From assembly GCA_030704615.1 (NCBI GenBank), contig CM060732.1:44826001-44890000 (forward strand): DNA of 64,000 bases, written 5' to 3'. The notes under the pieces were generated by a model that saw only the letters and a program-made list of their open reading frames with translations, was not told the DNA's origin and searched no databases. Position numbers and translations under genes: made by a program. Shown one piece after another: positions 12,346-40,230 of this stretch (position 1 is the first letter of the stretch; each line of letters starts with the position of its first letter). This DNA comes from Takakia lepidozioides (taxonomy: Eukaryota; Plantae; Bryophyta).

Positions 12346-13853
12346 ACGACTAGAGCTATTTTTGTCCATTTGGACAAAAATTGGCCCACCTGCTACCCCC
12401 TTTCATCCAAGGGATGAACCGTTGAAACATGTCCCTACCTAGTACATGCACAGGCACCCCAAATCCCCATATATTTGACCGTTCCATTTGAGATATTACA
12501 ACAAATAAGTTAGGTCCATTTTGTACAAAAAGCAAAAAAAGGTCCCAAAAGTGCATATTGACCAAGCCCGTGAGCAATGTTGCAAAATTTTCCAGGGCAA
12601 ATGCCCTCCATATTCCATTGCCTCCTCACATCCCGTAGGCTTTGTCAAAATTAGCCAAACTCAAACTTTTATGTGCTTATATTGAGGTTGTATTGTTCCC
12701 CTAATTTTGATATGCTCGGGATATCGTTAGTAGACATGTAGAAAGTGAAGAAAGAAACGATGAGAGAAAAAGTCAGCAGGATGATATGTTTATAGATACA
12801 CAAAATTGCTCCAAATCACACTATGTTATTGTTGAAGTATAATTTGTGCGAAGTTTAAAACAAGTTATAGACCTATCAGTCAACCAAATCCTTGGCCCTT
12901 TGTCCTTTTACAATTTCACTGCACATCAATGTCATCAACAAACTATTTAAAAATATTTTTATCAAAAATTGTATACATGTACAAGTAGATAGGTGACATA
13001 TTAAACAATTTAAAATGAGGTTCGTTTTCAATCTTCTCAAGGTCCGAGTAAGTTCCTTGAAAAACAAACAAATAAATTTTATACTAAATATTTTTACTTT
13101 TTCACCTACTACTTATGTGGTAGCCTTGGGCTTGTGCTCTTCAAGCTTGGTTTGCATGAAAGGTGATCACCATAATAGATCACCTCCAAGGGCTACGCTA
13201 CAACTATTTTTTTATGCTTCTTAAAGGCCATCCTTGCATGTCTTGCCAAATTGAAAACCATCCGGGGTACTGTCAATCTCCACCTATCCATTGCCTCTTT
13301 GCATCTAATTCTAGATAAACAGCTTGTAATATCTAACAATATTTTGTGCAACCCTGAGATAAACTGATCAAGACCTCTCATGTAAAGACCTTCCTCTATC
13401 AAGTGATTTACGTTTGAGGTTTGTAATTTGGGTCACGTACCTAGTAGCACTTCAATAAACTACCTATAGTAAAGCGGATAACTTATTACTTGGGGATCTG
13501 ACCATTACTCAGTTAACGTAGCCGTTACTGCATATAGCAAATGCAACCGACACTACTATTTTACTAGCAAGCTTGAAGAAGTGTGATCAAGACAAATTAT
13601 TATATCAGTTAGTATCCATTATAGAGTGGGGACAATAGATTGATAAATCATAAGATAAAACATGAATAGTCCTTATAAATTAAAATATTTACGAGGAGTA
13701 GCCAAATCAAAAGCAAAAAAGTTAAAACTTACATTGAGGTGAATAGGAAGACTCGTTGCTATTGTAACAACAAAAAATGAAGATGAAAGTCTTTTGCCAT
13801 ATGAGCGTAACCATCGACAAAGTCGCATCAAATTGTCCACATGTACGTATTTA

Positions 13854-16351
13854 GGGCCTGGCCGCACAGGGGGGTTACGAGCTGGAACCGAAGAGCTAAC
13901 CCACACTTCTCGCTTAACGGGGGCCGCAGAGGGGATCCTCCGATGCGGAGTTTTCGTATCCTGTCGGGGGCTTGTCAGGGGTTGATTATCGGATTTTGAG
14001 TCAAAATGAACAAACATGAAAGTAGATGATATTTCACGTTCCCAACCTGTCATCATTCCACGCTCCACGCTCGCTCCCAACCTGTTGTCATTCCCCGCTC
14101 CACGCCCGCTTCCAACCCTTGTCTTCAGATGGTGTTGTCGTTGGGGCGGAGAGGAAGGCAAAGTTGCGTTTCGAGCTTGATTATTGGTCTGTCTATGGTG
14201 GGCTTCTTGTGAATTACAGGGAATTGAGAGCCAGAGATATAGTAAGATGCAAAGATTCAGTTTGAAAGCTGATGTGATCTGTGAACCATAGAACAAATTG
14301 GTTTTTATTTTGGCTGTTCTTCTTTTCTGTTTCTTGTAAACATTCTCAAGCTAGGCGTGCACAATGGTTAGAGTCGTGTGGTCCATGTGGGTGGTGTAAG
14401 TTTCTGTCTACAAGGGAGATTTAGTCTTTGTGAGTGTGACAGATGGCCGACAGAAGTACGTATTCAGTCTTTGTTTGTTGTTGACAGACTTGTAGTCATG
14501 GACCCTTGCATATCATCGACAATGTCTGACGAACTCTTCAGTATATACTCCCTGCAGAATACTGAGACAAATTCAGAGCCGCCCTGCCAAATGCCAAAGT
14601 GGTCAAGTGCCTAAGTGATGCAGGATTCTTTGTTGATAAGTACGTTTTTCCCTTCCGACAAAACAAAGCAGACCACATAGTTTTGCAGCTCTCGTGCAGT
14701 AATGAACCTGTTGTTTGAGTGGTCTATAATTTTGGGACTTCCATCAATGATACATTTCAACACTAAAGCCTATTACAGAAGTGGACTTATCTTCTCCCCT
14801 TCTTATGGGGCTTCATTTTAGTGGAACCTTTGGAGTTTTTTAGGGATTCTCTCCCAACTCCTCTTCCAAATACATCTCGACTCTTGGCAACAGTTCGTGC
14901 ACAATGAGCTTCATCATTTGTCTAGACATCACCGGGGTGTTGTCAATGTAATTGCACATTATCCTGCTTGCACACAGTGAAATTTATTAGTTTCCACTAA
15001 TAACACCTTAGGACAAAACAAATGGCATGAATGAAGGCTGGTGTAAACACACCTAGTTTTGTCTCTCGGAATATGGCCTTCTCCACTAGGTCCACTTAGT
15101 AGTACCCATAGCAAAAATGTTTCTATCCATGCCAATAATCTTCTATTCTGTGACAATCAGAAAATCATAAGTATCAAAAAAAATATCAAGTCTGTAGCAT
15201 GTTGGGGGGCTGCTCAACAGAAACCCACCCTCGAGGCTATTTCTGGGTGAGGGGGGAGGGGATGGGAATGATCTTTGGCAGGATTCCAATAATCCTAGGC
15301 TTTGATTGTCTTCCTGCCAGAGGGCAGCATCAAGGTTATGTGGTTTTGTTGTTGGTTGTCTACAAATGGAGTGTTTTATTGCTAATGTGGTGCACTTCTG
15401 AGTCCTATGTATGTCAGTTCAGGGATGAATCGGAGAGTAGGCATCAGTGACAAGTGGTGCTCAATGGGTGATGTGCTCATTTTGACTATTCTGGCCAGAT
15501 GCTCTCTCTCACCTTATGCTTGCACTTGGCCTGATGTAATGATCCAAAAATGACTATCAAGGCTTGTATGTTGTCTCTCAATTAGGCTGCAGCTATTTCT
15601 GCTCCTCTCTCATTCCATCATTCCTCCCTTGATGTCCCCACCTTCTGCTATGCCCACAAGTGAGCACATGTTCCATAGGCGCAAGACTCTGCAAGTATGT
15701 TCTGAGGTACATTGCTCTCAGTATGCCAAGTCTCTTGTGCACAGGTTTTATTCATGTCAATTTTGGTGATAGCAGCAAGGCTATGTCCACCAGGGGTAGA
15801 GGCAATACTCTTCGCCACCTTGATGTCGTTCAACATTAATGGCGCTAATGTGATGGGGGTTCCTTGGGCCTGGACTTACTCGGCTTCTGGGTGTTACAAG
15901 CAAAAATTTCCAAAACTTGGCATAACAGTCTCAAAGCTTGTTGGAAATAAAGTTCACTACTCAACCTCTGCTCAATCTCTGCAATGTTTACCCCAAAAAG
16001 GTGTCCCGCAATATCTCTTCTATTCTTTGTTGCCCCCCCAAACTTCAATGTTGATTGCCTAGCTAATTCCACGAAGCTCCTTTCTTCAGACATGCTTGGT
16101 TTCTCTTCATCGCAGCAACCATCGCAATCATTCCTACGTTCCTAGTTCCCAATCAAAAACCGTGGATGAAGCAGAGATGAAATATTTAAGACTTTTCATC
16201 TTCAAGATATCTCGTTACATGGCTTGTGCAGCCCTTACGGGGACCCACCTCCTCCAGCTGGCGCCCAACTTTTAGTCTTCCCGCACACTTTAAAAAATTT
16301 CCAATAGTAAGCTATCGCCGGTCTGTACTGCTGCCCTGTGCGGCCAGGCCC
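13854..16351. mobile_element. PIF/Harbinger DNA transposon (decayed)
   Basis: Perfect 18-bp TIR GGGCCTGGCCGCACAGGG (13854-13871) / CCCTGTGCGGCCAGGCCC (16334-16351), with TTA TSD at 13851-13853 and 16352-16354. A weak minus-strand relic resembling the R..VERAFG motif of DDE_Tnp_4 lies near 15495-15530. Confidence 0.85.
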
Positions 16352-18167: not shown

Positions 18168-18854
18168 TTTATTTATTTCTGCCTAGGCGTGGACGTGGCG
18201 AAATATTTTTGGGACTGAGTGCAGAGGTGACGACACGTACAATGTCCACCTACACTCCACCTGGCTACATGTATAGCAAATATTATACAATATGTCGATT
18301 TTTTCACAACTTATATATATTACCCAAGTGACACTTATGTATTGTGGCAAACTAGCTATCATGAAAAAATCAATTCAAGGTAGCACTTCGCGCATCATTG
18401 CCCAATCGCCCACTATTTAGCAAACTGGCACCACTGATACAAATGAAACAACGCAGTTTTAGGCACCATAGCCCAATGCCACACATTAAATTGGCACTAT
18501 TGTCATAAGATAGAAAACGAAGGAGACAGGCACCATAGCCCACTTAAATCACGCATTCTAGCACTAGCCAAACAAGTCCAAAATGTTTCATAGCCACCAA
18601 TATGGCATGAAGTGTGGAACAAATCCGGATATCTTATATAGATCGAGGGAATCTCACTACACTTGCGCCCGGTTATCAGCGTCACGTTCGTCCATCAGCG
18701 TTAGGTCACGTCAGACCTGAAGGGACCTCCGTCATGTCAGGTTCGGGGAATATTCTAGTAACGATAATACCAGGTAAAATACTGTCACTTAAGCAGCCAC
18801 GTCGCCGACACGGTGACAGTGGCAAATAAATTTTAAAAATTAACAAAATGAACG

Positions 18855-19825
18855 CGACCGCCAATTATGGCGGTCGATTTATATTTTGAAATTAAAATAT
18901 ATATATCGACCGCCGTATTGGCGGTCGCTTCAATTCATTTTATAAAAAAAAACAAGATTGGTGGTCGCATTGGTGGTCGCTTTATCTTTTGAAATAAAAA
19001 AAGAAATAGCGACCGTCATATTGGCGGTCGCTTCGATTTATTTTTGAACAAAAGCAAGATTGGCAGTCGCATTGGCTGTCACCAAATTTAAAAAAGAAAA
19101 CAAGCGACTGTCGTATTGGCGGTCGCACAATTTTGCAAATATATACAAAACAAGCGACTGCCATATGGCGGTCAGATAATTTCAAAAATATATAAAAAAA
19201 CAAGCGACCGCCATTTGGCGGTCACTTAATTTCAAAAATATATAGAAAAACAAACAACCGCCATATGGGGGTCGGTAAATTTAAAATTATATAAAAAAAA
19301 CAAGCGACATATGAAAATAAAAGCGACTGCCACACCGGTGGTCGCTTATTTTAAAATAAAACAATAATTGCGACCGCCAAACTGGCGGTCGTTTAAATTT
19401 AATAATATATAAAATAAAAGCGACTACCAGCCTGGAGGTCGCTTAAACTTGAAAAAATAAGATTAAAAGCGGCTGCCTTACTGTCGATCGTGTTTTTTTT
19501 TTAATATTAAGAATAAAAGCGACCACCATATTGGCGGTCGCTTTATTTTAAATATATAAACAAATGAAACGACCGCCATATCGGCAATCGCATTATATTT
19601 TGAAATAAAAAATAATAGCGACCGCCATACGAACGGTCGTTTAAATTTAAAAATATACAAAATAGAAGTGACCGAAATATTGCACAAAATGAAAGGAAAT
19701 AAAAGCGACCACAATAGTGGCGGTCGTTTGTTTTTCATTAAAAAAAAAAATAGTGACCGCAGTATTAGCGATCGCTTAATTTCAAAATTATAACTAATAT
19801 GGTTGTACCGCCTATTTCGGGTAGA
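18855..19825. repeat. Array of palindromic GCGACCGCCA-N-TGGCGGTCGC units with AT-rich spacers
   Basis: Roughly 20 inverted motif pairs at ~40-60 bp spacing, directly visible. Confidence 0.9.
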
Positions 19826-19883
19826 CGCTATTGGTTCGTCATTTATTCATTTCACTTTCATTTCACTTTCATCCTTCCTGGAT

Positions 19884-19893
19884 TATATATAAG
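19884..19893 (+). promoter_or_regulatory. TATA box upstream of the hAT transposase
   Basis: TATATATAAG just downstream of the motif array and ~300 bp upstream of the transposase coding relic. Confidence 0.5.
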
Positions 19894-20184
19894 GGAGCAG
19901 GATCACCAAGCTCCTCATTTCTTTTGACGCAAATACTTGAGGTTGCTTTGGATGTTCTCTTCCATTGAATGAGAGTGTAGCCCAAGAGGAGGGTGCGTAC
20001 ATTTTGCCGTTGTGGCTTCCACCGAAGCCACTTTAGCGGATTGTGTATAAACTCAACACTACAACCCATATCGACCCACTTGGGTTGCTGACAGGTGTAG
20101 AAGTGTTGGGCTATCGCATTGCATTCTACATTCACAACACATTCATTTTATAGGTGACTATTTTTTGTTGTTTACATCACTAGG

Positions 20185-22673
20185 ACCCAGGGGAGTGGAT
20201 ATTGGGTGAAGATGAGGGAGAAATGAAGTCCTTGGTATACGGCAATCCCGAACACTGTCAGTGCCACTGGTAGTGTTGAGTGCAACCTATGTGGATTAAA
20301 ACTTTCTTATCATAAAGATCGATTGTTCGCTCACATCGGCTATAGAGGTGTAAAGAGCACTGGGATGGGTTTATGCCCTAAAGCATCTATGTGGGTAAAA
20401 AACCACTTTGCCCAGTGTGGAGGCAATATTCCAATGACTCTGGATCTGGACATGACTTCTAAGCAGAACACTTCATCTTCCCGTCAGGATCCCCAATTAG
20501 TACCCAATGCGACTTTTGTGAGGCTTCAGGTATCCTTTGACAAGTGGGTTGTGCCGGAGCAACACCTGCTTCAACACCTCTTTGTACCCCTACACTTCAA
20601 TGGAGTAGAAGATTACAGCATTAATCCATGCAAGAAGGTCTTAACTTGTCTGCGAAAATACAGTTGGATAAAAAATGGGCGTAGTTTTTTTATGCCAACA
20701 TACCATTTAATGTGGCAGCATTTGTTTCTTCCGTTAGAGCAACCTCGGAGTCTAGATCCATGTACGTACCTCCAACTTATCTCAATCTCCGCACAGGATT
20801 GCTAGAAGACGCCATGACCGAGCTTATCCAAAATATCAACGATAGGACGGGCGAGTGCATCAGAAAATATGGAAGCACTAAATATGCCGATGGTTGGAGT
20901 TATGTTACAAACAGATCATTATTCAATGTCATGCTTGCATGTCCAACTGGGAAATAATTCTTGGGATCGGTCGACACCAGCGGCGTGAAGAAAGATGGAC
21001 GTTATCAATGTCAACTATTGACGAACTTCATCGAATGGGTCAGAAGTGATAGAATCGTGCAAATATGCACAGACAATGCCGTTAACATGAGAAACACTGC
21101 AGACATGTTGTTGGCATGTTATCACCATATGTACTATCAAGGTTGTGCTGCTTATATCCTTGACCTCTTTTTGGAAGATTGGGGAAAAGAACAGTGGGTG
21201 AAACAACTTGTCAAGCGAGCGAAGACCGTTGTGTTGTTCATCTGCACACACCATATCCCTTTGGCAATATATAGGAGGCACAAACCCAAATACAGCCTCC
21301 GGAATCTAGACGAAACTCGTTTTGTCACTAACTTCTTAATGGTGGATCGGTTGGTGACGGTGAAGAGCAGTCTGGAGCACACCATCATTGATCCTCAATG
21401 GGACGCGTACACACAGACATTGCGGGATTCCAGAAAAGCCAAGTCATTGGGCAAAAGTCGAAAAGTTCGGGAGAGCATTCGTAGCGATGATTTCTAGAAG
21501 AAATGTGAAAATTTTGTTTATATGGTAGAGCCGGTGTTAATCGTCTTGCGGGAGTTTGATGGAAATCAACCAGTAACGGGCAAGGCATGGTTACTAATGC
21601 AAAATCTTGAGAAGCACGTTCAATCCTTGAGGCATTATCCCTTCTCGTTGGAAGCTGAATTTGCGGACAGTGCTGAGGATGCATTTTACAACCGTCGTTC
21701 AATGGTTCGAACGGACTTGCATTATGCGGGGGCTTTGCTCAATCTATTCTTGCTCAACAATAACATGCTCCGAGTCGACGCTGATGCCAAGGCTGGCCTC
21801 GTGCAAATGCTCATGCGACTGGCTCCGCCGAACATGGCAAAGAGAGCTATATCCGAATATCAATGTTTCTCAGTTCGCCGCGACCCTTTTGAGGACATGC
21901 CGGATCCAAAAGAGCTCAATATGTTGTCACATGAATGGTGAGATTTGATCGGAGCTAGAGCAAGAACATTGGCTTCTATTGCAAAGTATATTCTTGCTCA
22001 AGTGTGCTCTGTCTTATCTTGCGAACGCAATTGAAGCAATTTTTTATTTGTTCACAACAAGATTCGCAATAGGTTGAATCTCGCGAAGGCTGACAAATTG
22101 GTGTACGTGTATACCAATTGCCGACTGCTACGTGAGAGAGCAGCAGATGATACTACAGCATGGTATGAGAAAAATTTGCATTCCGAAGACTCTGCTTCTG
22201 AGGTAGATTCGATGAGTAACGATACTGAATCTCAGAGGGAATCATCTCAGAGGGAATTATCTGCCTCCGATAGTGAAGATAGATCCGATGATGCTCCCGA
22301 AAATGCGTATGACCCGTTTACGTTCACAGAAGATGATGCTTATATCCAGCCAACCTTTGATGACCTTCTTGAGGGAGTACGTATCGCAGATAAAGATGAA
22401 GCTGCAATTATATCATCCCCAGAACACGGTCCTCAGAATGAAGTTGGGATCGATCATTGCCCCCCACTACAGGCTGAAGCCACCAGTAGTGCCCCAGTGG
22501 AGCTTAGGGGTGATGAACTTCTAGGACCTAGCGACGTACATAACCATGTTCATATAAACGATGGTGTTGAACCCATTGTACGGTCGACGGGACGGATCAT
22601 GCCTCATCGATACGACCAGTTCCACCACAACACCAAAACCGATCCAGCTCTCCATCAACACAGCAGGCATTAA
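20185..22673 (+). pseudogene. hAT transposase (BED-finger relic, DUF659, hAT dimerisation domain), disrupted by stops and frameshifts
   Basis: DGWSYVTNRSLFNVM; IVQICTDNAVNM; GCAAYILDLFLEDWGK; ETRFVTNFLMVDRL; LHYAGALLN; LAQVCSVLSCERN*SNFLFVHNKIRNRLNLAKADKLVYVYTN; acidic C-terminal tail. Confidence 0.92.
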
Positions 22674-23479
22674 GGAGCAACAGGGTTGATCTGTTTTCCA
22701 CACGCACGCACCATTTTGCTGCATTGGATTGGGCGGAAGTTGAAGCCTCGGATGATGACAACCTGCCACTACATTTCTACCTTAACCGACGTGTTGCGCA
22801 GTAGACCCGTGGTTCCTCACCTGCCGGACCATCTAATGTCGGTCCATTTCGGGCAGACCCCCTCCAGTACCTCCTTCGAGACCATCTTCGAATGCGTCTC
22901 AAGTCCATAAACGACAAAGAACAGTCTAACATTTCGTAGGCGATCGACCCACAAACTGGCCAGATACTGTGGATGGTATTCAAGACCGGAGTGGGAGTTG
23001 ACCTCAGATAGAACTAAATATGGTTCGAGGTCGCTTGCAGATTCAAAGACCTAGACATATGAGGTCGGATAGGGAAGACGATTCCAGCACTGAATGGTGG
23101 TGAAGTCGAGGGTAACTCGGACTTTCAGCCCATCGGAGCATGAGGATTAAGATCTTTTTCGTCCCGCCGTCGAAGCAGTACAAGGAATTGAAGCAAAACA
23201 GCTCTAGGCATGATTCAACACATTTTTGTGGAGATGTTTATATTTCTGTAGTGAAGTAATACCAGTGTGATCATTGTCAGTATGAGTATTTGCATTGTTG
23301 TTGTGTATGTGTTGGGAAATAAAATATGTTGTCTACGTGTATACCAGCCAAAATGTCGGCCAAAGACACAGTCACTTGCTCATGTTTCTGTTCGGTGATT
23401 TGCTTATGGAATGAAGAACAATTGTGCCAATGCTTTCAATTCTGCATTCATTTTTATTTTAATGCAGGGACCGGCATCA

Positions 23480-24625
23480 CTGGCGGTCGCATTTGTTTTT
23501 TATTCTTTGTAAATGCAACGAACGCGATGTAATAGCGGTCGTCTTTTGTTTTTTCGTAAATTTAGAGATCGCCAAAACTTTCGGTCGCTTGTTTTTTTAA
23601 TTTTAGAAAATGGATCGACCGCCATATTTAGCGGTCGTTTTTTTGGATTTTTTAAATAGAGCGACCGCCAAGGTGGCGGTCGCTTCTATGAGGTGTGCCT
23701 TGCAGTGAGGTGGGGGGATAAGCTCCGACTCATTCTCCCGTCATTTCCATTATTGGCGGTCGCTTGAAGTTTTTTTTTTTGGTAAATGTAGCGACCGCCG
23801 ATACTGGCGGTCGCTGTGATTGTTCTTTTTAAAAATATAGCGACCGCCATTACTGGTGGTCGCTTTTATATTTTTTTTGTAAAATGGAGCGACTGCCATT
23901 TGTGGTGGTCCATTTTTTTTGTTTTTTAAATAGAGCGACCGCCAAGGTGGCGGTCGCTTCTACGAGGTCTGCCTTACGCGTGGAGTGAGGAATGAGGCGG
24001 GGAGGGCTATATAAGCTCCGAGTCATTTTTCCCTCACTTCCATTACTGGCGGTCGCTGTAATTGTTCTTTTTTATAATGCAGCGATCACCATTACTGGCG
24101 GTCGCTTTTATTTTTTATTTTTCCAAAATGGAGCGACCGCCATTAGTGATGGTCATTTTTTTTAAATGGAGCGACCGTGGAGGTGCCTGTCGCTTCTACG
24201 AGGTCTGTCCTGCACGTGGACCGAGGAATGAGGCGGGGATATATTTTTTATACATGCAGCGATCGCCATTAGTGGTGGTCGTTTTTATTTTAATTATTTT
24301 AGAAATGAAGTGACCACCATTACTGGCGGTCACTTTTTTTTTATTTGGAGGAAAATGGAGCGACCGCCATTACTGGCGGTCGCTGTAATTATTTTAGTTT
24401 TATAAATGACGATTTTATTTCAATTTCTTTGGAAATGAAATGACCGCCAGTAATGGCGGTCGCTTTAATTCTTAATGTCACTATAAACGTAGCAACCGCC
24501 AATGCTGGCGGTTGCTTATTTATTTTATTTTCGGAAAATGGAGCGACCGCCAATTCTGGCGGTCGTTTTTTTTTTTTTTTTTTTCTTACGAAAAATGGAT
24601 CGACCACCAAGTGGGCGGTCGCTTC
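23480..24625. repeat. Second GCGACCGCC palindrome array, containing 3-4 copies of a promoter-like module
   Basis: Repeated GCGACCGCCATTACTGGCGGTCGC. The module GGCGGTCGCTTCTA(C/T)GAGGT...ATAAGCTCCGA(C/G)TCATT...CACTTCC recurs at ~23675, ~23948, ~24190 (partial) and ~24614. Confidence 0.88.
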
Positions 24626-24674
24626 TAGAAGGTTTGCCTTGCGCATGACCCAATGAATGAGAGGGGGGGGGTTT

Positions 24675-24682
24675 TATATAAG
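24675..24682 (+). promoter_or_regulatory. TATA box upstream of the hairpin cluster
   Basis: TATATAAG followed by a pyrimidine-rich initiator-like stretch CTCATTCTCCCCTCACTTCCTCTCC. Confidence 0.5.
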
Positions 24683-25020
24683 CTAAGGGAGGCTCATTCT
24701 CCCCTCACTTCCTCTCCACACAACTTCTGTGTGCGTGACATTTTATTATTCCACGACACGTAGTCACGTGGAGAAAGAGGCCATTGGATGGGTGGGGGGA
24801 CTTCTTACATGGTACATTGAACATAATGGCCAAGTCTGAAAGCGAACCAAAATCATTTTGATGGGCAACCATCCGTTGAGCCATTCATGGTATGTTGAAC
24901 ATAGCGGCAAAGATTGAAAGCAAACGAAAATCATTTGGATGGGAAACCATTCAATCGCCCGTTGAATGAATGGGGTTTGTCTCAGATTAAACCGGGATCT
25001 GTTACATGGTATGCCTTTAA

Positions 25021-25322
25021 AGTTCTTTTTGTAGTATCTCCTGCTTCGTAATGTGGTGCTTCGTAATGTCCATTTTATCCAATATATCGATGTTCTCCAC
25101 CTGGAACAGATCCACATATGTGTGCAGAAATCCTTAAATAAGCAAATGACCATCTCCACTTTTATAAGCCTCATCCGCAGCTTCCAGTTTTGATGGTCAT
25201 TTGGTTTTTTAAATATTTATATACGCATGTGTGGATATGTTCCAGATGGAGAATATCAACATTTGAAAAATAAAAGTTGGAGAAGCATCTCATTACGAAG
25301 CAAGAGATATTACAGAAGACCT
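25021..25322. ncRNA. Long imperfect hairpin A (~130 bp arms)
   Basis: 25021-25154 pairs with 25192-25322 (TGCTTCGTAATG/CATTACGAAGCA; CAAATGACCATC/GATGGTCATTTG). RNA expression is not shown. Confidence 0.6.
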
Positions 25323-25423
25323 CAACATGTTGAACATCTAGATGAAGAACCTTGTCCATCGTCGTTTGAAGCACTTCTGAAATGATCACATGTTCGTTGG
25401 TGGAAACTGATCTCGTAGGCCAC

Positions 25424-25607
25424 CACTACAGAAAAAGGGGGGGGGGGGGGGAAACAGCCCGGGCAGAGGTGAAGAACCAAATTTGCGACTCATGGGCGTC
25501 GCAAGGGCATTGCCAAAAAAACGTCGCAAATTTGCAACAAATGGGGGTCACAAATAGGTGAAACCGCGATTTGCGACGTCGACGCGATTTGCAACTCCTG
25601 GGCGTCG

Positions 25608-25666
<59 letters not shown>

Positions 25667-26448
25667 ACTCTGCAATACAGAATTAGCACCGTCCGGGGGT
25701 CACAAAGTGCGACGCCTGGACGTCGCAATTTAAGGGGGGTACATTTGAATTTAGGCAGAAAAATTTTGAATTTGAAATTTGAATTTCAAAAACTTGTGGA
25801 CCATTGACTCCGGCGTTGACCATTAACTCCGGTTCTATCTAATGACGATATGTTCATTGTTCTACATATATCATGCAATGCATACTTGAACCTAAGACCT
25901 CCACGTTATAACATTTCTAAGTCACTACAGACTATCCAACACACCTACGTTACATCTATGTATCACAAAAAACAATCTAAATATAAATAAATATATATAT
26001 ATATATATATGAAGATTTCCTTCAAGTTCCTTCTAAAGGGATCCCTCTTGTGACGTCGAGGAGTGGCGACCTCCATAGCCTTAGTGCCCAGCCCGAGCCC
26101 CAGCGTCGTCGCCATTGTTGCACTCCCCACCGCCAGGCGCCCCAAGCTACGTCCTTGAGATGACCTAAGCTGACTACAACACCATTGCGACCTCCTCTGG
26201 TGACGCCGTTGCAACCCCTGGCGTCGCAGCGTTGGACGTCCCCGCAAGAAAAAAAAATCCGTCGCAGCGAGGACCCTATTTCCCCCTTCATGCCACCTAG
26301 CGACGGTTGGGTGTCGCAATGGTGTCGCAGCGGAGTATTGCGACGTCGGGGCATCGCAAAAAACGTCGTGGGCTCGGCTTTGCGGGCTCAGCGCCGCGTA
26401 GGGCGTGGGGGCGCACTAACGTCGCAAACCCCCTCATTTGTTGTAGTG
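25424..26448. mobile_element. Non-autonomous CACTA element
   Basis: CACTACAGAAAAAGGGG ... CCCCTCATTTGTTGTAGTG termini, 3-bp TSD CAC (25421-25423, 26449-26451) and subterminal GCGACG/CGTCGC repeats. Confidence 0.9.
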
Positions 26449-26481
26449 CACTTGATCTCGTACCCATCAAAGACTTCCGTA

Positions 26482-26571
26482 GGCCACATGGAACGGTTTA
26501 TGCGATACATTTTCACAAATGCGATGTGATACATTTGTGAAATGGTATCACATCAACCGTTTCATGTGGTC
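26482..26571. ncRNA. Hairpin B, pre-miRNA-like (40 bp stem, short loop)
   Basis: GGCCACATGGAACGGTTTATGCGATACATTTTCACAAATG pairs with CATTTGTGAAATGGTATCACATCAACCGTTTCATGTGGTC. Confidence 0.6.
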
Positions 26572-26641
26572 AATGCACCTCTTCCGCACCATGGCGAAAT
26601 ATTTGTCACTTGAAGGCACAAACACAAATAATCTGTGCAAA

Positions 26642-27019
26642 CAATCTCAAGAATCATATGTACTGCAAGGTGTTTCATACTACCGATGTTCATGTAGCTG
26701 AATTATTTAGGAATCGTTTTGCTACTCCCATTCCAACAACATCAGGCCCACTGGGACTGCCATATTTTGAATTCCGTATCAGCCACCACGGACATGAAAA
26801 CAGGAACTTCGCACAAAATCTCCAATTTATTCAATTTATGGTGGGCCGTGGCTGCAGCCTGCAAGCTCGCCGGGGTAGCTGATACGTTCGTTTGAACATG
26901 ACAATCTCAAATGACCTGATATTGTTGGCATGAGAATAGCAAAAAAAGTACTACAGAATTCAGCTAGAGGAACAATAATAGCATGAAATACCTTACTGTA
27001 AATATGATTGTTGACATTG
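26642..27019. ncRNA. Long imperfect hairpin C (~150 bp arms)
   Basis: 26642-26791 aligns without large gaps to the reverse complement of 26871-27019; the supplied ORFs 26610(+) and 27036(-) translate to visibly similar peptides. Confidence 0.6.
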
Positions 27020-27087
27020 GTGACAACTCCAATCAATAAAGAACTCGCACCATCAGTTGCGTTCCTGCAGCAGCACCGATCTCCCGA

Positions 27088-27640
27088 GTAAATAAAATTC
27101 CATTGTAAATAATAAATTGCATATGGTCGAACCTCACAGATGTCATGTCAACAAAACCGGCCGTGTATTGTGTCGGTGCTTATAACTTCGAATGTTTCAA
27201 TGTTTCTAACATGGTACTAAGAAAATGATATATTGGTTCCGTACGAGTTAGATAACAAACGTTTCATATCTCATTCAAATGTCGATACTACATGAGTGAC
27301 ATGGATAAAAAACTAATATGTGTACATGCGACCTCCGGACATTTAAGTAGACCATTCGCTGGACCTAGTATCAAATGTTCCGACCTCGGAGGTCGCATGT
27401 ACCCCTATTAGTTTCCGATCCATGCCTCTCATGATAGTATTGCACATCCGACTGAGATGTGGGACGTTTGTTATTTAACTCCTACAGAACTAATACATCG
27501 TTTCTCATAACCCTAGCGAAAACGTTGGAACATTACAAATATAAACAGTGAGACAATACACAAACCATTTATGTTGCGATGACATGTGTCAGGGTCGAGC
27601 AAATGCAATGTAGTATTTACAATGAGACTTTATTTATTAC
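27088..27640. ncRNA. Long imperfect hairpin D (~250 bp arms)
   Basis: CATTGTAAAT...GTACATGCGACCTCCG (27101-27338) pairs with CGGAGGTCGCATGTAC...ATTTACAATG (27387-27624). Confidence 0.65.
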
Positions 27641-29006
27641 ATGCACGATCGAAATTGAGTTTTGTCTTCATAAAAGAACCATTGTACCGCCACAAATCTC
27701 ATATCTATGAAACTATGGTCTACTCCGTTCTATATACGTCTTTCGGCTCAGGCCAATTGAATGGCTTGCCCATGAATCAAAGTACTACATGGACTAATGT
27801 GACTCTCTCATTATTGTTGTTGTTGTCGTACAACCTTTGTAGCATTGAATGCCAACAACCTCCCATAAATTGGTCTTTAAACATACTTTCATCATAATGA
27901 GCGCCGCCATTTATTCGTACTGCTATCTTCCCAATGGCAATGGCCTCCGTCATTCGCATTGAAAACCGATGCAATATCTTTTTTCACCCACCATCTTTTC
28001 GCGAGTTCCCGGTCCAGCTTGTCTTGGTTTTTAAACTGGTACGGTGAGGCTTTGCGGATGCCCAATGGGGTAACTAAGCCCTAATCACACACCCCAATCT
28101 TGATCTCCTCAGTGTCATCCGGAAAATGCAACAAAATGTTGTCAGGGGAGAAGTCCGTTCTTGTGGACAGCATCCATGATACACACCAGTGCCCATGCAA
28201 GTTTATTGCGCACTTTCCGAAAACGAAGCAAGCGATTGCATTCTTACAACTCTGCTTCCGTTCCCCTTTGTTCCAAAATCACCCTGTTGTCCGAATCCAT
28301 TTGCCCTTCATCTTTTCTTTCAAGGTTTAATGCGCGGGTTATCCCCCATTCTACAGCGAGTGTAACCCTCACCTCATGTGCATTCACAGTAAATTATGAG
28401 ATAACATAGGATACTAGACCTCATCATGTCCAAACACTCAAGTTTATGTGGTCCAAAGTCTTTTCTGGATTTGAGATAACTGGGTTGTTTTTTTTCCCGC
28501 TAGCGGGGTGTCCAACGCTCCGGTATTCTAGAATCGGCAACAATCCTACACTGACAGACCTTAACATACCCTTCTTCTTTGTAAGGGCCAATCTCTACAA
28601 CCTTCGCACTAGTGTTCAGGTAATAAAGACTAGTTGTGTCTCCCCCGCCTGATGACCCCGCCTCCCAAGGGACAACCCTAGTCGGGCAATGGGAATTCTG
28701 ACTAGCCGAGCAAGCCCAATACTCGACACGCCGCATTAACTCAGCTTCGGCGGATGACACTCGACCCTCGGTTGTTCTACCCTTCCATGTCTTCATTAGC
28801 TGCTTTAAATTCCACGTGACATCTTTTGTCGTGCTTTGGATCCATCGATTGAACTTCGGCTTGTCCCTGTTCGCCGTCCACTTAAACCGCCAAAAGCGTT
28901 CGTCATTTTCTCTCCATATCTGCTGGAAAAATCTGAAACCCCTCCCATCCATGCCTGACATTCGGGTAGTCTGGCTTGTGGACCTGGCTATCCCGCTCGT
29001 GGGCAT
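27637..29006 (-). pseudogene. Decayed protein kinase-like gene carried in the hAT region
   Basis: Manual minus-strand translation gives kinase motifs in order: IGPYKEEGYVKV (Gly-loop-like, ~28557-28593), LAGKK (~28488-28503), ALVCIMDAVHKNG / DFSPDNILLHF (catalytic loop, ~28120-28190), IKIGVCD*GL (DWG with TGG>TAG, ~28075-28104), KRWWV, TEAIAIGKIA (IX) and LQRLYD...ERVT (XI). Several frameshifts. Confidence 0.75.
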
Positions 29007-29373
29007 GTTTTCTCTTCCTCCGACCCACAGACAACCCCGCCCCAGAACTTGAATTCACAACCCCCGACATTGTATAAACTTTTGCCCACTACCGGGGACA
29101 AAATCTCATAAAACGGCAATGGACGCGTGTGGATGGTGTTTTTTTGAGTTTCTGCAAAAAAAATTACAGCCGGAGATCATAAAATGGCAAAATGGTGATA
29201 CGATGATTGGACCGTGAACAAAGGTGTGAGACTGACCAATACAAAACCTCCCCCCCCCAAATAATCACTTTTGCACCTCCCGTGGCAGTGCCAAGCAACG
29301 AAGTACCAAAAGGACTACGGGATGTCAAGGAACCGCACAGAGAGGGGCAAAGTGATCAGAAAATGAGGGGAGG

Positions 29374-29381
29374 TTATATAG
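29374..29381 (-). promoter_or_regulatory. TATA box upstream of the kinase gene
   Basis: CTATATAA on the minus strand between the third motif array and the ORF start at 29006. Confidence 0.5.
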
Positions 29382-29569
29382 GCGCCCATCAACCCCCCCG
29401 CCCAAAATGACATTATGCGTGAAAAGGCGCGATAGGCCAGTGGCGCCTCGCCACGCACACCTTCATGGGAGAGGTCAAGGGTTCAAAACCATCTCCATGT
29501 TTTGTTTTTCCTGACCCGTGGCACCTTGCCACGTGGCTGGACAGTCGCCGCTTCATGATTTTTTATTTA

Positions 29570-30270
29570 TTTTTTAAACCGCTACACGGCGGGTCCTTGG
29601 ATTTGCAAAAAAAAAAAAAATACGCGACTGCCGCATAGCAGTCGCTATATTTATAAAAACAAGAAGAGCGACTGCCAAATGGTGGTCGCTGCATTTTTTT
29701 AAATATATAAATAAGCAACCGCCTACTGGCGGTAGCTTTAATTCAAGATTCAAAATAAAATAAGTGACCGCCACCTTCAATGGCGGTCGTTTCATTTAAA
29801 AATATATATAAAGTAAGCGACCGCCAGTAATCAAAATCAATCAAGCGACCGCCGCCAAATGGCGGTCGATGCATTTTCAAAAATTTACTAAAGAGCGAGC
29901 GCAACCGGCGGTTGCTTTATTAATAAATAATTAAAAATAAGCGACCGCTGCTTATTGACGTGCTCGAAATTTTGTTTAAATAAAGCGACCACCACATGGC
30001 GGTCGATGTATTTTAGTAAAATATATTAGAGATATAATAATAATAATATAATAAAGTGCGAGCGACCGCCAGGTGGTGGTCCTTACTTTTTTGAACTTTA
30101 GCGACGCAATAGCAGCGGTGCTTATTTTAAGATATAATATACTCCAAGCGACTGCCAATGGTGGGCGGTCGCTTAATTGAAGAAAATATTAATTACAAAC
30201 GGACTGCCAAATGGGTGATCATTCATTTAAAAAAAACAATAAATTATGTGACCGCAATATAGGCGGAGTT
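29570..30270. repeat. Third GCGACCGCC palindrome array
   Basis: Same inverted motif pairs with AT-rich spacers. Confidence 0.88.
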
Positions 30271-31099
30271 ATTTTCAAAAGGAATAATAAAATTAATAAT
30301 TGGCCACGTCTGTTTTACACCGTGGCTGCCATGTCATTAGAAAGGGTAGAAATAAATTGGAAAAGTCAAATGTAAAACAAATTACATGGATAAATGTCCG
30401 GATTCGATAGCAACTCCTCAGGGGTCGCTCTAAATTGGAGTGACCCTTTGGGCGTCACTAATTCGTCGACGACGCCGGCAGTGCACGGTTCCACGCGCGC
30501 CGGGCTGTGGGCGTCGTTAACCCCCCTAAATTTCAGTTCGTGATAGTCCGGGAACGAATGAGTTTCTGGAGATATCAATAGTTCTCCAAATCTTGGTGAG
30601 AGGATTGATGTCAAAGGGGGACTCAATGGCAGCCAAAACTTGCTTTTCGTACACAACTTAAGTCTTAAACATACCTTGCTGGGATTCAAGGTCGCTGCAG
30701 TGATTGAGCAGACCCAGCACTGTCTTTTTTCGTACCCGTGCCAAACACATGTGCTTCACCATACCAATTCTTCAACACATCAAGATGCTTTGGAAAACTC
30801 TCGCCTACTTGCAACCAATATTGTGGGTATACTATACCCATGCACAGCAATGTATGCTGGAGAAATCTCAAGTTCAGCTCGCTACAAGTTACGTCGTTGC
30901 AGCTGCACGTCCATAGGCACACATGTTAGTATACAGAAACCAATTAAATTCAAGCTCTAAGTCCCCCCCAATGCTGCCCAAACCATCCCCACCCCCCCCC
31001 CCCCCCCCCCCCCCGCTTCATCCATTTAACTGAGTAAGCCATCACAAGATCACAAAAATGACAGAACAAAGCTGAAGTGAAGGGGCTGGTTAGTATCAC

Positions 31100-34717: not shown

Positions 34718-35520
34718 TCAAACTCGGCTTACATCCGTGGGGTGTGGAATCTGTGCGATGGCCTCTACCTTAGTCTGTCGCACCCCCAATCCTCCAGGAT
34801 ATATCATGTAGCCCAGATACTCAATCTGGTTGTGAAAGAACTTGCACTTCCCCGGATGTAATTTCAATCCGTGCGCTCTCAAGCACTCAAACACCACCTG
34901 AAGGTGTCTCTCGTGCTCATCTACCATAGCACTAAAGATGATGATGTCATATATGTAGCACCGAGCAAAGTCTACCCCTGCTAGAATCCTGTCCATGACT
35001 CTTTGGAACTCTGCAGGAGCGTTCTTAAGCCCGAATGGTAAGAACCGCCACTGATATAGGCAATCCTTCTCGTGCTCATTGATCCCCCAGAATGTCATCT
35101 TCTGCTTGTCCGCCTCCTTGAACGGCAACTGGTGATATCCAGACCGTAAATCCAAAGTGCTAAAGACCTTGGCATGCCCGATGGCATCAAAGATCTCCTC
35201 AGGTGTGGGCATGGCATACTTATCGGACTTGGTCTGACGATTTACAGGCCGGTAGTCACCGCACATACGTCTCTCCGTCCAATTGCCATAGACATCCTTT
35301 TTGGCTGGCATCACCGTGGCTGAAGCATACTCTCCACCAGAGAGCTCCACCAAACCAGCCTCCCAGAGATCTCGAGTCCTCATCTGAATCAAAGACCTCT
35401 CCATGTCACTGTATCTATAGGGTCTCCGAAAGATTGGCATGTCCGTAGCCAACTCAATACGAATCTCCTGACCCTTCAGTGCTCCCAAATCCTTCAAACT
35501 GAAGGCAAAACAATTCCTAT
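34718..35520 (-). pseudogene. Gypsy reverse transcriptase (catalytic YIDD mutated to YIYD)
   Basis: RMCGDYRPVN, FSTLDLRSGYHQ, LPFGLKNAPAEFQRVMD, CYIYDIIIFS, KCKF. Confidence 0.95.
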
Positions 35521-35899
35521 AAGCTCTCAGGAACCGCCGTATACGTCGTCTCTCTCCTCCAGTGACAATGGGTCCAATGTCAGGCTCCCAATTGTCCTCC
35601 GTAACAACAACCTTAAGTCTAGCAGACTTACAGGTAGAGGACGTGTCCCGTGGTTGCTATGCCGCAACCTCTTGAGCAGTACTCCCTACCTGCTCAGTCA
35701 ATGGATGAGGTTGGGGATTCTTCTTGGTTAAGGAGGTCCTCAAGGATGAGATGATGGGGCAGGATGAGGCCTTGTCATGCCAACTCCCTCTGAACCTTGA
35801 GCACCTCCCACGTGTGCCATGGATGTCTACACCCCGTGGTCCTCACCGGCTCGCACCCACTTACTGCCCGTCTCGGTATACAGAGAGACCGTCAAAGGA

Positions 35900-36885
35900 A
35901 GTGCACTCCGTACTTTACGTTGCTCAGCCATAGCCAAGCTGATAATCCAGGTCAAGCAATTGAGATCCATCGCTTGCCCCAACACGTGACGACGTGATGC
36001 CTCAGAAAGAGAAGGCACCCCCGTGGTCCCAGTGGAAAAACCCATAGCCCGCTCGCGCTCGTCAGCGTTAGGCTCCACTAACTGCTGCAAATGAGCATCC
36101 CATAGGAGGTCAGGTCCACTATCCTGGAAAACATGCGATCCTGGGAAGCTGAGCAGTGTAGGTAGTGCTGCTTGTGGTTGACCCACCTTGTTGACCACTG
36201 CCAAAGGCGAACGGTCATCGTATTTCACACGCTGAGACTGCCTCCCTATGTCCAAAATTCTATCCACTGTGAGGTGTGCTAGCCGCTGTACCCCATCAAA
36301 TGCACGCTTGAGCCGTGCGGGTGGCATCAAGTTAGTCCACCATAGCCGCGGATGATGAGCCTGTGACCCCACTGCAGCTGCATCCAGCAACACTGCTGAC
36401 CCAAGCCACGACCGGAGTTGATGCACACTGGCCATTACCCTGGCCCGAGAATCGCCCATCAATGGCACATTCTCCAAGATGTATGCTAGAGATACAGCTT
36501 GATGAAGCTGTAAGTGGCGCAAAACCCGCACCATCTCCCAAAACAGACCCGACCTCGAGTCTCGCAATCCATTGCCATGCCCGGCTGATGAATACCCTTG
36601 GCAGGGCCAACCTGCCACTACCAAATCAATGGAGCCAATCCGCTCCAAATCCTACGCCCCCAGCACAGAGATATCTGCTGGTAAGGCCTGCTGATATCTA
36701 CGAACCGCGGACACCGGCAACAACTCAGGGTACTGCTGCACCAACTGAGCAACATGACGGAGTGAGACGCGTCGTGCAGTCTCATCCCTCTCCACATACA
36801 AGTAACGTTGTACCTGTACACCTGCCTGTAGCACAACAGTCAATCCGGTGCTGATCCCGCCAAACAAGTCCAAAAGACAAATGTC
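35900..36885 (-). pseudogene. C5 cytosine DNA methyltransferase domain (DNMT3-like) inside pol
   Basis: Motif I LLDLFGGISTG; IV IDLVVAGWPCQG; SGLFWE; VI YILENV; VIII AHHPRLWWTN; IX ERERAMGF; X RRHVLGQAMD. It shares a reading frame with the protease ORFs. Confidence 0.92.
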
Positions 36886-37199
36886 TTCCTCCGGTCACTG
36901 CAACACGATCGGTGTGGTATCCAATGGTGACAACTGAGGTGGTCTTGGTGCAATCCTCGCACTGTCCTCCTCTCCTAATGGTACAAATGCCTCTACCCAG
37001 GCTTGTTGCACCCATCGATCAGCAACCCGCTGCAAATCCTTGCTCGAGCCCCACAATGGAGTGTGAGCAACCATGGCAGGCAACTCCGCCATGCTGTACA
37101 TGTCATCCTGCTCTCCCGAAGGTAACATATCCTCTGAATGAGTGTTGTCATCCAACAACTCTCCAGGCCAAGTCACTGCAGTTGTGAATGCTGTCAGTG

Positions 37200-37625
37200 T
37201 CGACAACTTGCCTCGCTGGGCAACCGCAACTCCTCCTATGAACGTCACAGGGAGCTGCACACGCCGGCCCTCCCCTGACTGCCATCCAGGCCTATAGGAA
37301 GCTGACTCCTCCCAAAAATCCAGGGTGAAGCCCATGGGGTACAACACTGCCCCACCAGCAAGGACATCGTATGAGACCGTGTCTGTCACAATGGCCTTGG
37401 CTCTCATCACTAGGCCATCTGTAGGATGATCCGGCTGTAGTATGATAGCCAACTCATGTCGTGTCATGCCCCGAGCCTGCTCTGATCCTCCCAGAGATGT
37501 CTATATCTGGAAATGACACAGCTTCATATCCGCCTCCGTGAGGCCCAAGCCCGCAATAGCAGCTCTGCCCAGCATCAATGGCTAAACTCCCGAGTCCAAC
37601 AAGACCCACAGTGGCCGGTACGTCT
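37200..37625 (-). pseudogene. Gypsy aspartic protease
   Basis: VLLDSG(V*)PLMLG ... SYDVLAGGAVLYPMGFTLDFW. Confidence 0.8.
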
Positions 37626-38738
37626 TGCCTGCCGGTCCACTCAAACAGAAAATGCCATCATAGTTGTCTAACATGACAACTCCAGGTGTCACCATGGCGC
37701 GCTCAATGGCTGGCCTAGTTGGTAGCTCCGCCAACCTGGCAGCTGCTGCTTGCCATGGCACCGCCGTGGCAGTCTTGAAATTCGAATCCGAGGATCCCTC
37801 CGGCACTACACCTCCCACTATCTCCGCAGAAGATAAAGTAACCTCCCCACTCTCACAAAGTATAGCTGCCAGCCTGAACACCTCAGCTGGTCTTACCCCC
37901 GGCGTCGCAATCATGGTAGCCGAAAACAATGGAGCCTAGCACATAGCTGTGGCCCCCCCCCAGCAGCACACTAGCTGTCGTAGCCATGACAACACTAGGT
38001 AGTGGTGCTGCCCGTGTAGCTCTCCCCAGTAGCATAGTTGTCACGGACATAGCCCAGAAGAACTTACCAGGAGTAAATACCAGAAGTTACCAAGTTACCA
38101 TGTTACCGAAACTTACCATGACTTACCGTGATTTACCATGATTTATCATGATTTATCATGATTTACCATTACTTACCAAGTTACCGAGAGTTTACCAAAT
38201 TACCAAGAGTAACTTGGGAAACTACTCAGGAAGCTTCTTTTTGAGGAAACTTCTCCATCAAGATACCTCTTTTGTTTAAGGAAGCTTCTCCATCAAGAAA
38301 CCTTTGTTTAATTTTGGAAACTTCTTCAGCAAGAAACCTCCATAGGGGAAGCTTATTGGGGAAGCTTCGTAGTAGCCAGTATATATAGGAGGTAAGACTG
38401 GACACTCTTCAGTCTCGCCAACACCAGTTCAAGCTACTCTTGTTTCTAGTTTCCAGTACTCCAGTCCAGTTCCCAATACTCTAGCCCAGTTTCTTGTATC
38501 TGGTACTCCAGTCCAGTTTCCAGCATTCCAGTATTCAAGTCGTGTTCCAACATCTTGTACTTTTGTTCATTGTTATAAAGATCGTCTTGATTCCTATTTA
38601 CTCATCGTGCATACGGCCACGCTGACCTTGACTTCTTGTCTAGTCTTGTACCTCTAGTCTGATCTATTGTTTAAGTTCAGTCATGTTCTTGTCCTTGACA
38701 GTTTGGCGAGACTAAAGTTTGTTCTTTAGTTAATTAAG

Positions 38739-39753
38739 ATGGAAGACACATTTGCGGAAATGGTCACCACATTGCAGAGTCTTCAGCTCCAGATGCAAGA
38801 ACTTCGTACATCTACCGCCCAATTGCAAGCTGATCAGTCTCAAGATCTTGGCAACGCTCTCCACAATTTGCAACAACAAATTTCAGAGTTAAAGGAGTCG
38901 AACAATGGATCTTCAACCATACGAGTCCCTATTACAACAGTTCCTACTACAACGGTTCCTCTTTAACAGATTACGAGAGAACCAAAGATCAGCATGCCCG
39001 AGAAATTTGATGGGACGAGATCAAGATTTTGCGGTTTTGTTCAACAAGTACGACTGTTCCTATGACTACATGATGAAGGTATTCAAGTGGGATTCGTGGG
39101 CACCCTTCTATCAGGCAGTGCCCTATCTTGGTTTGCACCGCTATTAGAAAAAAAATCACATTTATTATATAATTTTGAAGCATTCATGTCCGAGTTCACT
39201 GCAACGTTTGGAGAGAATGATAGAAAGAGAGTTGTAAAAACAAAGATGCGAAATCTTCGACAAGGAGCACGTCCTGCTTCCGTTTATGCTGCCGAATTTC
39301 GACAACTTACGTGCGACCTCGACTGGAATGAGAAGAGCCTTATTAGTCAGTTTCGATGTGGACTAAAAGATGATGTAAAAGATTTGTTGCTGACAATGCA
39401 CACTGAGTGAATTCATCACCCAAGTCATTGCATTCGATAATCGTTTGTTCGAAAGACGTCAAAAGAAGCGATCTGGATGGTCGACGACGCATCATGTCAC
39501 TGTTACTACGACACCAAATACAACGATTCATCAGACATCCAGTCGTGATCCTATGCAGATTGATGCTGTCCGATTCAAACCATTGACGCCACAAGAAAAA
39601 CAAAGACGGCGTTCGAATGGATTATGTCTCTATTGCGGAGAAGAAGATCACATAGCATTAAACTGCCCCAACAAGAGAAGATTCAAAGCTCGGGGCACAA
39701 CTCAAGTGTTCGATACGAGGAGGTCGGAAAACGACGATGTCCAGTCACAGTAG
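38739..39753 (+). pseudogene. gag (retrotransposon gag domain + CCHC zinc knuckle)
   Basis: MPEKFDG; LLSGSALSW; LRQGARPASVYAAEFRQL; DPMQID; CLYCGEEDHIALNC. Internal stops/frameshifts. Confidence 0.9.
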
Positions 39754-39785
39754 GGACCCTGCGGTTGGACACCACAAATTCCTTA
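39726..39785 (+). promoter_or_regulatory. -1 ribosomal frameshift signal (G GAA AAC + pseudoknot)
   Basis: Slippery heptamer 39726-39732; stem TGTCCAGTCACAG/CTGCGGTTGGACA; loop TAGGGA can pair with TCCTTA at 39780-39785; the protease ORF is in the -1 frame. Confidence 0.75.
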
Positions 39786-40230
39786 CCGAAAAAAAGTCTC
39801 TTTCTACCTCCAGACCCTGCACCTTGCTTCACAGTTCAGGTAAAAATCAGAGTGCAAAATCGAGATATCGTTGTAGAAGCACTTTTGGACTCAGGAGCTT
39901 CAGCTTGTTTTATGGACAAAAACTTTGCGAAACAACACAATTTAACGCTCGTAAAGAAGAAACTCTCGGCCCCCGTTGAAGTCATCGATGGACGACCGTT
40001 AGGATCAGGAAATGTGGACCATGAAACTCGACCACTTGAAGTGAAGCTTAAAGATCAAGCATCACATATTGTTTTCAATGTCATCCAGTCTCCAACGAAT
40101 CATGTGATCCTTGAACTTCCCTGGTTCGTACTTCACAATCCCGACATCGACTGGAGATCGCGAAAAATTTCTGCAAGACAAAAATGTAGAAATATCAAAG
40201 GTATGCAACCCCTATTCCTTGGAGCTAGTG
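39733..40230 (+). pseudogene. Aspartic protease of the nested element
   Basis: VEALLDSGASACFMD...VEVIDGRPL...VILELPWFVLHNPDIDW. Confidence 0.88.

Follow-up and report, generated by a model that had tools for sequence, protein, structure and literature searches.

Genes, arrays and hairpins at the locus

The window, i.e., the whole 64-kb stretch of DNA that was analysed, contains a non-functional copy, shortened by internal deletion, of a hAT transposon family with several genes from a land plant, probably a bryophyte. The copy is about 10.9 kb long when a CACTA MITE within it is left out. Its features are the following, with the strand given where one was assigned:

18600-18830: left terminal region, in which no TIR and TSD pair was found
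18830-19800: left palindrome array, about 14 units with A-rich spacers
19884-19893, plus strand: TATA box of the transposase gene, as recognized in the sequence
20230-22670, plus strand: decayed hAT transposase gene, with a zinc-finger-like N-terminus, DUF659, the two Asp motifs and the Glu motif kept, and a long acidic tail
23450-24630: middle palindrome array, about 16 units with T-rich spacers, including four copies of a 101-nt promoter-like unit
24675-24682, plus strand: middle TATA box, a candidate orphaned promoter of a RING/coiled-coil gene
24797-25010: tandem repeat of 80-120 bp, two to three units, present also in two sequencing runs guessed to be RNA
25021-25322: hairpin 1 (z about -16)
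25424-26448: later CACTA MITE of 1025 bp with a 3-bp TSD (CAC), located between hairpins 1 and 2 and absent from other copies
26470-26585: hairpin 2 (z -8), with a 3' arm that in translation looks like part of the RING-family N-terminal domain
26634-27026: hairpin 3, which folds better on the minus strand and has diverged homologs in the runs guessed to be RNA
27086-27640: hairpin 4, the apex of which holds a 13/14 match to an array unit of a sister element
about 27720-29070, minus strand: decayed, intronless gene for an atypical protein kinase, with a basic N-terminus, a helical domain and a kinase domain
29240-29380, minus strand: TATA box (29374-29380) and 5' leader of the kinase gene, conserved in the distant relative L002 (z 10.6)
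29580-30250: right palindrome array with A-rich spacers
30360-30493: interval in which the abundant family sequence ends, with a degenerate, TIR-like short hairpin at 30419-30450

The arrays, the TATA boxes, the hAT transposase, the four hairpins, the kinase and the decay of the copy had all been described in an earlier note on this DNA, and all are present in the sequence of the window.

Judged by its domains, the transposase is a hAT-type DDE transposase. The version in the window matches DUF659 (E = 1e-17) and is 49-50% identical to a relative of 1054 aa, and its relatives match Dimer_Tnp_hAT. The gene is disrupted by six stops in 20589-22292 and by a frameshift after the zinc-finger-like N-terminal part. 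Its promoter region is similar to that of L024, which is the nearest relative by transposase (z 4.4).

The unit of the arrays is a palindrome, consisting of GCGACCGCC, 2-8 nt and GGCGGTCGC, which recurs at a spacing of about 50 nt with AT-rich spacers. Exact matches to GCGACCGCC number 34 in the 64-kb window, where 0.04 would be expected, and 29 of them are located in the three arrays (18.85-19.63, 23.48-24.62 and 29.82-30.17 kb). The other five lie in a separate sister element at 44.2-45.3 kb, and confinement of the 9-mer to the present element was not confirmed. T-rich spacers set the middle array apart from the left and right ones, whose spacers are A-rich, and it is thus inverted with respect to both. 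The observed/expected ratio of CpG is 1.5-2.2 within the arrays as compared to 0.64 for the window.

The ends of the copy, being decayed or disrupted, are less sharply defined. Searches of the window for a TIR with an 8-bp TSD and for CACTA-type ends yielded low-complexity matches only, and the ends originally placed at 18647 and 30568 have no such TIR and TSD pair. On the left side, the segment 18680-18858 is similar to the terminal part of the sister element, located at 45509-45698 (z 5.9). On the right side, the summed depth of the contigs drops from 9682 at 30360 to 466 at 30493, and the abundant sequence therefore ends before 30568. At the middle array, a TIR or TSD was not found either.

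Other copies are abundantly represented in sequencing runs. In two DNA runs, contigs cover all of the 24.7-30.5 kb region in thousands of variants, mostly 90-95% identical; hence, the hairpins and the kinase are both multicopy. In these DNA runs, the depth of the tandem repeat at 24797-25010 exceeds that of the remaining stretch about tenfold. Contig joints skip the MITE, which identifies it as a later insertion, and a joint of 24873 to 27703 in a DNA run connects the region behind the middle TATA box to the 3' end of the kinase gene, which means that one or more copies are devoid of the hairpins and have both of their neighbours. Where other copies differ from that in the window, A>G (87) and T>C (89) changes prevail over C>T (19) and G>A (26) changes. 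Thus, the other copies have G or C where the window copy has A or T, a pattern expected for the decay of a methylated copy. Two runs from different studies (X6 and X7), whose status as RNA is a guess, contain diverged pieces of the tandem repeat and the hairpin cluster, and no kinase.

Kinase and RING genes in related elements

Relatives were found via transposase homologs on long contigs of one ENA sample from another plant. Three loci of this sample (L005, L017 and L018) hold a kinase gene on the minus strand and a RING/coiled-coil gene and a hAT transposase gene on the plus strand, in identical order. The element in L005 (1845-13518) is bounded by the TIR CAGGGTTGTC and an 8-bp TSD matching at 7/8 positions, and that in L018 (2351-13860) by the same TIR and an 8-bp TSD matching at 6/8 positions. 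These complete elements measure 11.5-11.7 kb. L017 contains the same three genes and a left TIR, and its right end falls outside the locus. Each gene in these loci is preceded by a cluster of a CG-rich motif, unlike that in the window, and by a TATA box. An array directly upstream of the TATA box of each gene is found in several lineages, with motifs that differ between lineages. In L002, at a protein identity of 34%, the GCGACCGC motif, the TATA box and the leader of the kinase gene have all been kept.

From these relatives with their TIRs and TSDs, a single organised hAT family emerges that carries a kinase as cargo and has genes headed by an array and a TATA box, as the earlier note had proposed. 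It had suggested asking whether the modules lie within shared TIRs and an 8-bp TSD; for the kinase and the hAT transposase, this is the case in the relatives, whereas no such pair is found around the copy in the window.

The kinase of the window is homologous to intact kinases of 492-497 aa (E about 1e-21), but it is interrupted by stops and frameshifts, 82 bp present in a 90%-identical copy have been deleted from it, and its catalytic motifs are disrupted. The intact relatives have a Gly loop of the form GG(F/Y) and the motifs FAAK, HNDxxPxN and DWG, and they match Pkinase (E = 5e-8). Intact, intronless kinase genes, encoding 492 and 497 aa and with motif clusters upstream, were obtained from two further samples, the contigs of which are too short to reveal a transposase; intact kinases are present in L022 and L023. 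Copies closest to that in the window have a basic, NLS-like stretch at the start of the kinase, which is probably a nuclear protein.

Values of dN/dS were 0.31-0.45 for the kinase, 0.32-0.34 for the transposase and 0.24-0.41 for the RING gene. In neutral simulations with transition bias of the kinase catalytic domain, the mean dN/dS was 0.6-0.75, and 0.32 was reached in 0-8 of 300 simulations. In the comparison of the window with L001, which covers a short piece of the kinase, the signal of selection was not significant by itself. On these substitution patterns, purifying selection is judged to act on the kinase in the same way as on the transposase (dN/dS about 0.3), and also on the RING/coiled-coil gene of the relatives. 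Passive capture of the Pack type was ruled out by the full-length intact kinases and by their dN/dS of about 0.3 as compared to about 0.6-0.75 under neutrality.

Since TIR- and TSD-bounded relatives hold a kinase, a RING gene and a hAT transposase, and since the kinase is under purifying selection, the kinase is genuine cargo of this hAT lineage. Besides the RNA hairpins, the lineage retains a protein-kinase gene of its own and, in most cases, a RING gene, which is missing from the copy in the window.

Comparison of the kinase with PDB returned generic kinases and no close solved relative. A search of viral contigs with the kinase gave no match, and a viral origin is therefore without support; a first metagenome scan for the kinase was empty. 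The N-terminal domains of the cargo proteins gave no informative match in Pfam, in Atlas or by fold. Two AlphaFold models were of low confidence (pLDDT 53 and 42) and had no match in Foldseek. Matches in Atlas were below 0.9. As both structure models are poor, they demonstrate no DNA-binding fold, and the protein that might bind the arrays cannot be named from them.

The middle promoter and the hairpin cluster

Relatives carry the RING/coiled-coil gene behind an array of this type. In the window, regex, tblastn and HMM searches revealed no remnant of the RING gene, except for the match in hairpin 2 discussed below. Because the gene is absent, the middle TATA box may be its orphaned promoter rather than a promoter of the hairpins, and we regard this as the somewhat likelier origin of the box. 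The 150 nt at the middle TATA box match best, among 39 comparisons, the RING-family promoters of L006 (z 5.9) and L017 (z 5.5), but they also match a transposase promoter (z 3.9) and do not match two other RING promoters; with matches so mixed over 39 comparisons, the resemblance to RING promoters is suggestive only. The proposal that the hairpin cluster is a third module with its own promoter is weakened by these findings.

The four hairpins score z values from -7 to -20 relative to shuffled sequences, with no consistent preference for folding of the plus strand across them, and none matches Rfam at the gathering score. When translated, the 3' arm of hairpin 2 yields the motif C-x-x-F-V-x-W-x-H, which fits the conserved N-terminal domain of the RING family, and the other arm is antisense to this motif. 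The match of hairpin 2 to the HMM of this domain, one of four HMMs tried, amounts to 11.5 bits, a score reached by 0 of 300 shuffled sets, and about 20 of 26 nt are identical to L016. With the HMMs of the kinase, the RING domain and the transposase, the hairpins gave nothing significant. In hairpin 4, a 14-mer at the apex is one base off the unit repeated in the array of the sister element (44-45 kb), which is a post hoc observation. The possibility that an open frame on the minus strand of hairpin 3 is an exon captured from the host was dropped, as the flank of the contig from a run guessed to be RNA resembles a hairpin arm and Pfam was blank. Variants of the family within the stems strengthen a pair in three cases, weaken one in one case and break one in another; being few and mixed, they do not demonstrate covariation.

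Hairpins 2 and 4 are the only ones with an assignable source, and both match transposon sequence. The matches point to putative small RNAs directed against the element itself or against sister elements, rather than to miR820-like targeting of the host. The idea of miR820-like targets among host silencing genes has so far found no support.

A possible control system, its alternatives and known transposons

Taken whole, the reading of the locus as a deletion derivative of a family with the anatomy described above and with a mechanism of control has an even chance of being correct. Its anatomical part, i.e., the architecture of the element and the family, is highly probable. That the arrays, the kinase, the RING protein and the hairpins together would form a control system is an interpretation with slightly less than an even chance. 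In such a system, an element protein, either the transposase through its zinc finger or the RING gene product through its N-terminal domain, would bind the arrays, and this binding would maintain the activity of the element's promoters in the face of DNA methylation, in the manner of VANC and TnpA. The transposase, or proteins of host silencing, may be targets of modification by the kinase and the RING protein. Small RNAs from the hairpins may act against the RING gene of the family itself and against the arrays of sister elements, which would amount to self-limitation or competition and be closer to Mu killer than to miR820. The copy in the window probably lost the RING gene by deletion, together with the greater part of the 120-bp repeat; the CACTA MITE inserted into it, and its genes decayed through C-to-T and G-to-A changes. 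A fully specified circuit, in which an element protein reads the array promoters, a nuclear kinase and a RING ligase counter host silencing, and small RNAs of the hairpin cluster tune the accessory gene of the element and suppress sister elements, is somewhat unlikely.

Several observations count against the whole reading, among them the lack of a TIR or TSD in the window copy. In a quick tree, the transposase of the window is on a different branch, far from the TIR-bounded elements with a kinase; the cargo is therefore either old or exchanged between branches, and the tree fits either. The gene order in the TIR-bounded relatives differs from that in the window, and no conserved cluster of four hairpins comparable to that in the window was found in them. 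None of the DNA-run contigs over 24.7-30.5 kb spans the modules. Two other hATs, L006 and L016, contain a RING-family gene or its N-terminal part with arrays of their own, and no kinase within 10 kb.

The locus might instead consist of two neighbours, an ordinary hAT extending from the left to the middle array and, abutting it, a separate cassette with the kinase and the hairpins that shares the motif and moves with other elements or non-autonomously. The polarity of the arrays (A-rich, T-rich and A-rich from left to right), as for subterminal repeats, the lack of a common TSD and the presence of the motif in the element at 44-45 kb all fit such an arrangement, but it appears improbable given that relatives hold the kinase and the hAT transposase inside one TIR/TSD pair, that the joint in another copy links the region of the middle TATA box to the 3' end of the kinase gene, and that the middle array, too, is without TIR or TSD. 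Alternatively, the cargo could be real and the rest passive, with arrays that are subterminal repeats for binding of the transposase, spread inward by rearrangement, and with hairpins that are neutral fold-backs or MITE-like debris. hAT transposases indeed bind subterminal repeats (PMC10368747), and the motif before the kinase in L023 resembles the subterminal motif of L005 and L017. However, the position of arrays just upstream of the TATA box of each gene, in several lineages with differing motifs, counts against this view. Likewise, the array-like palindrome at the apex of hairpin 4, the lack of a conserved hairpin cluster in the TIR-bounded relatives and the mixed effects of the stem variants would suit neutral hairpins, whereas the abundance of all four in the family and their diverged homologs in the runs guessed to be RNA would not, and we consider a passive origin of both arrays and hairpins unlikely.

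A further possibility, following the earlier note, is that the middle array and TATA box drive a polycistronic hairpin RNA that silences silencing genes of the host, as in the precedent of miR820 (PMC3459959). The TATA box is located about 350 nt before hairpin 1, the hairpins are strong, related pieces are present in the runs guessed to be RNA, and no source was assigned to hairpins 1 and 3. Nevertheless, this possibility has a small chance only, as the hairpins that can be assigned match transposon sequence, Rfam matches at the gathering score are absent, the expected RING gene is missing behind a promoter that is weakly RING-like, and folding does not consistently prefer the plus strand.

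The maintenance under selection of a kinase and a RING gene on distant branches implies a putative transposon-encoded toolkit for signalling or anti-silencing, no description of which was encountered. As the intact kinases (L022 and L023) can be assayed and the arrays form a defined candidate binding target, counter-silencing by transposons becomes testable outside Arabidopsis. If the hairpins act on sister elements, they would represent competition between transposons by small RNA.

To our knowledge, the classical hATs (Ac, hobo, Tam3 and Hermes) encode a transposase only. A search of an incomplete body of literature, apart from Repbase and Dfam, brought up no hAT that carries a kinase or a RING gene. 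The present family is like others of the superfamily in its transposase with DUF659 and hAT dimerisation domains, in its subterminal repeats and, in the relatives, in short TIRs starting with CAGGG and 8-bp TSDs; it differs in the kinase and the RING/coiled-coil gene, in the internal array before each gene and, in this genome, in the hairpins.

In the VANDAL elements of Arabidopsis, VANC binds dense arrays of a 9-base motif (PMC5735166). Common to these elements and the present one are the organisation as a DNA transposon with several genes, the dense tandem arrays of short motifs in non-coding regions and the turnover of motifs between lineages (PMC5735166). In contrast, VANDAL elements are Mutator-like and the present one is a hAT, its motif is a CG-rich palindrome, and homology to VANC was not seen among the Pfam, Atlas and fold matches of the cargo N-terminal domains. 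Thus, the VANDAL analogy that had been drawn holds for layout, as an analogy, and does not extend to the transposase, which is of the hAT and not of the Mutator type. By its sequence, the element is not a VANDAL, though VANDAL-like in layout, nor is it a Pack-type capture. According to the available part of a report on Spm TnpA and transposases, an element protein reads dense motif clusters and activates cognate copies (10.64898/2026.08.24.746577). Dense motif clusters are shared with the elements studied there, in which the transposase itself can be the regulator; this activation was shown in CACTA and Mutator elements, and that part of the report describes no kinase or RING cargo (10.64898/2026.08.24.746577).

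With respect to the hairpins, miR820 is a single miRNA, borne by a rice CACTA element, against the host gene DRM2 (PMC3459959). In both cases, a hairpin RNA, here predicted from sequence, is located inside a DNA transposon, but here there are four unrelated hairpins, two of which match transposon sequences. Mu killer of maize, which silences cognate elements, is one rearranged derivative that contains a long and perfect repeat (bioRxiv 10.1101/2020.01.09.900282). The present element resembles it in having a hairpin made of transposon gene sequence, and differs from it in that the hairpins are short, imperfect and common to many copies.

Shared motifs and repeats in the hAT element

A CACTA MITE that lies within the hAT element (window 25424-26448) contains GCGAC...GTCGC palindromes of its own, and a 5-bp core is common to these palindromes and the hAT arrays. 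The core motif of the arrays recurs, as the variant ATGCGACCGCC, in a sister element at 44120-45700, one end of which is similar to the left terminal region of the hAT element (18680-18858). The sequence CACTAGTGG at 44120 suggests that the sister element has a CACTA-like end; no gene was recognised within it. The hAT element also contains a weakly structured tandem repeat with units of 80-120 bp (24797-25010), the depth of which is ~10x that of the rest in DNA runs, and which is also found in runs that are, as a guess, RNA.

Retrotransposons and LTR pairs

Three further features were found in the window:
34718-37467, minus strand: Gypsy-type retrotransposon; beside its reverse transcriptase is a domain of the C5 DNA methyltransferase family (PF00145 at E 1e-12)
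38039-41336: gag/protease-like ORFs flanked by a pair of LTRs (91% across 662 nt)
48944-52235: orphan ORFs at 49684 and 50533, between paired LTR-like sequences (92% across 771 nt)

A homolog of the second orphan ORF (50533) is located at 1195-1519. Elsewhere, L001 carries, from position 464 onward, a 90%-identical copy of the kinase, which an LTR retrotransposon interrupts.

Flanks and ends of the relative loci

In L017, which carries kinase, RING and hAT genes, the right end of the element is replaced by a ~118-bp satellite with a palindrome (TGTCTCGGATCCGAGACA; 13200-14400). Two features accompany the hATs of two other relatives:
L016: transposase gene flanked on both sides by inverted repeats, long and degenerate, at 6263-7362 and 13157-14543
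L005, 13860-20290, minus strand: second hAT, abutting the first

This second hAT has a short array and a TATA box immediately inside its left end, and it belongs on the window transposase's side of the tree.
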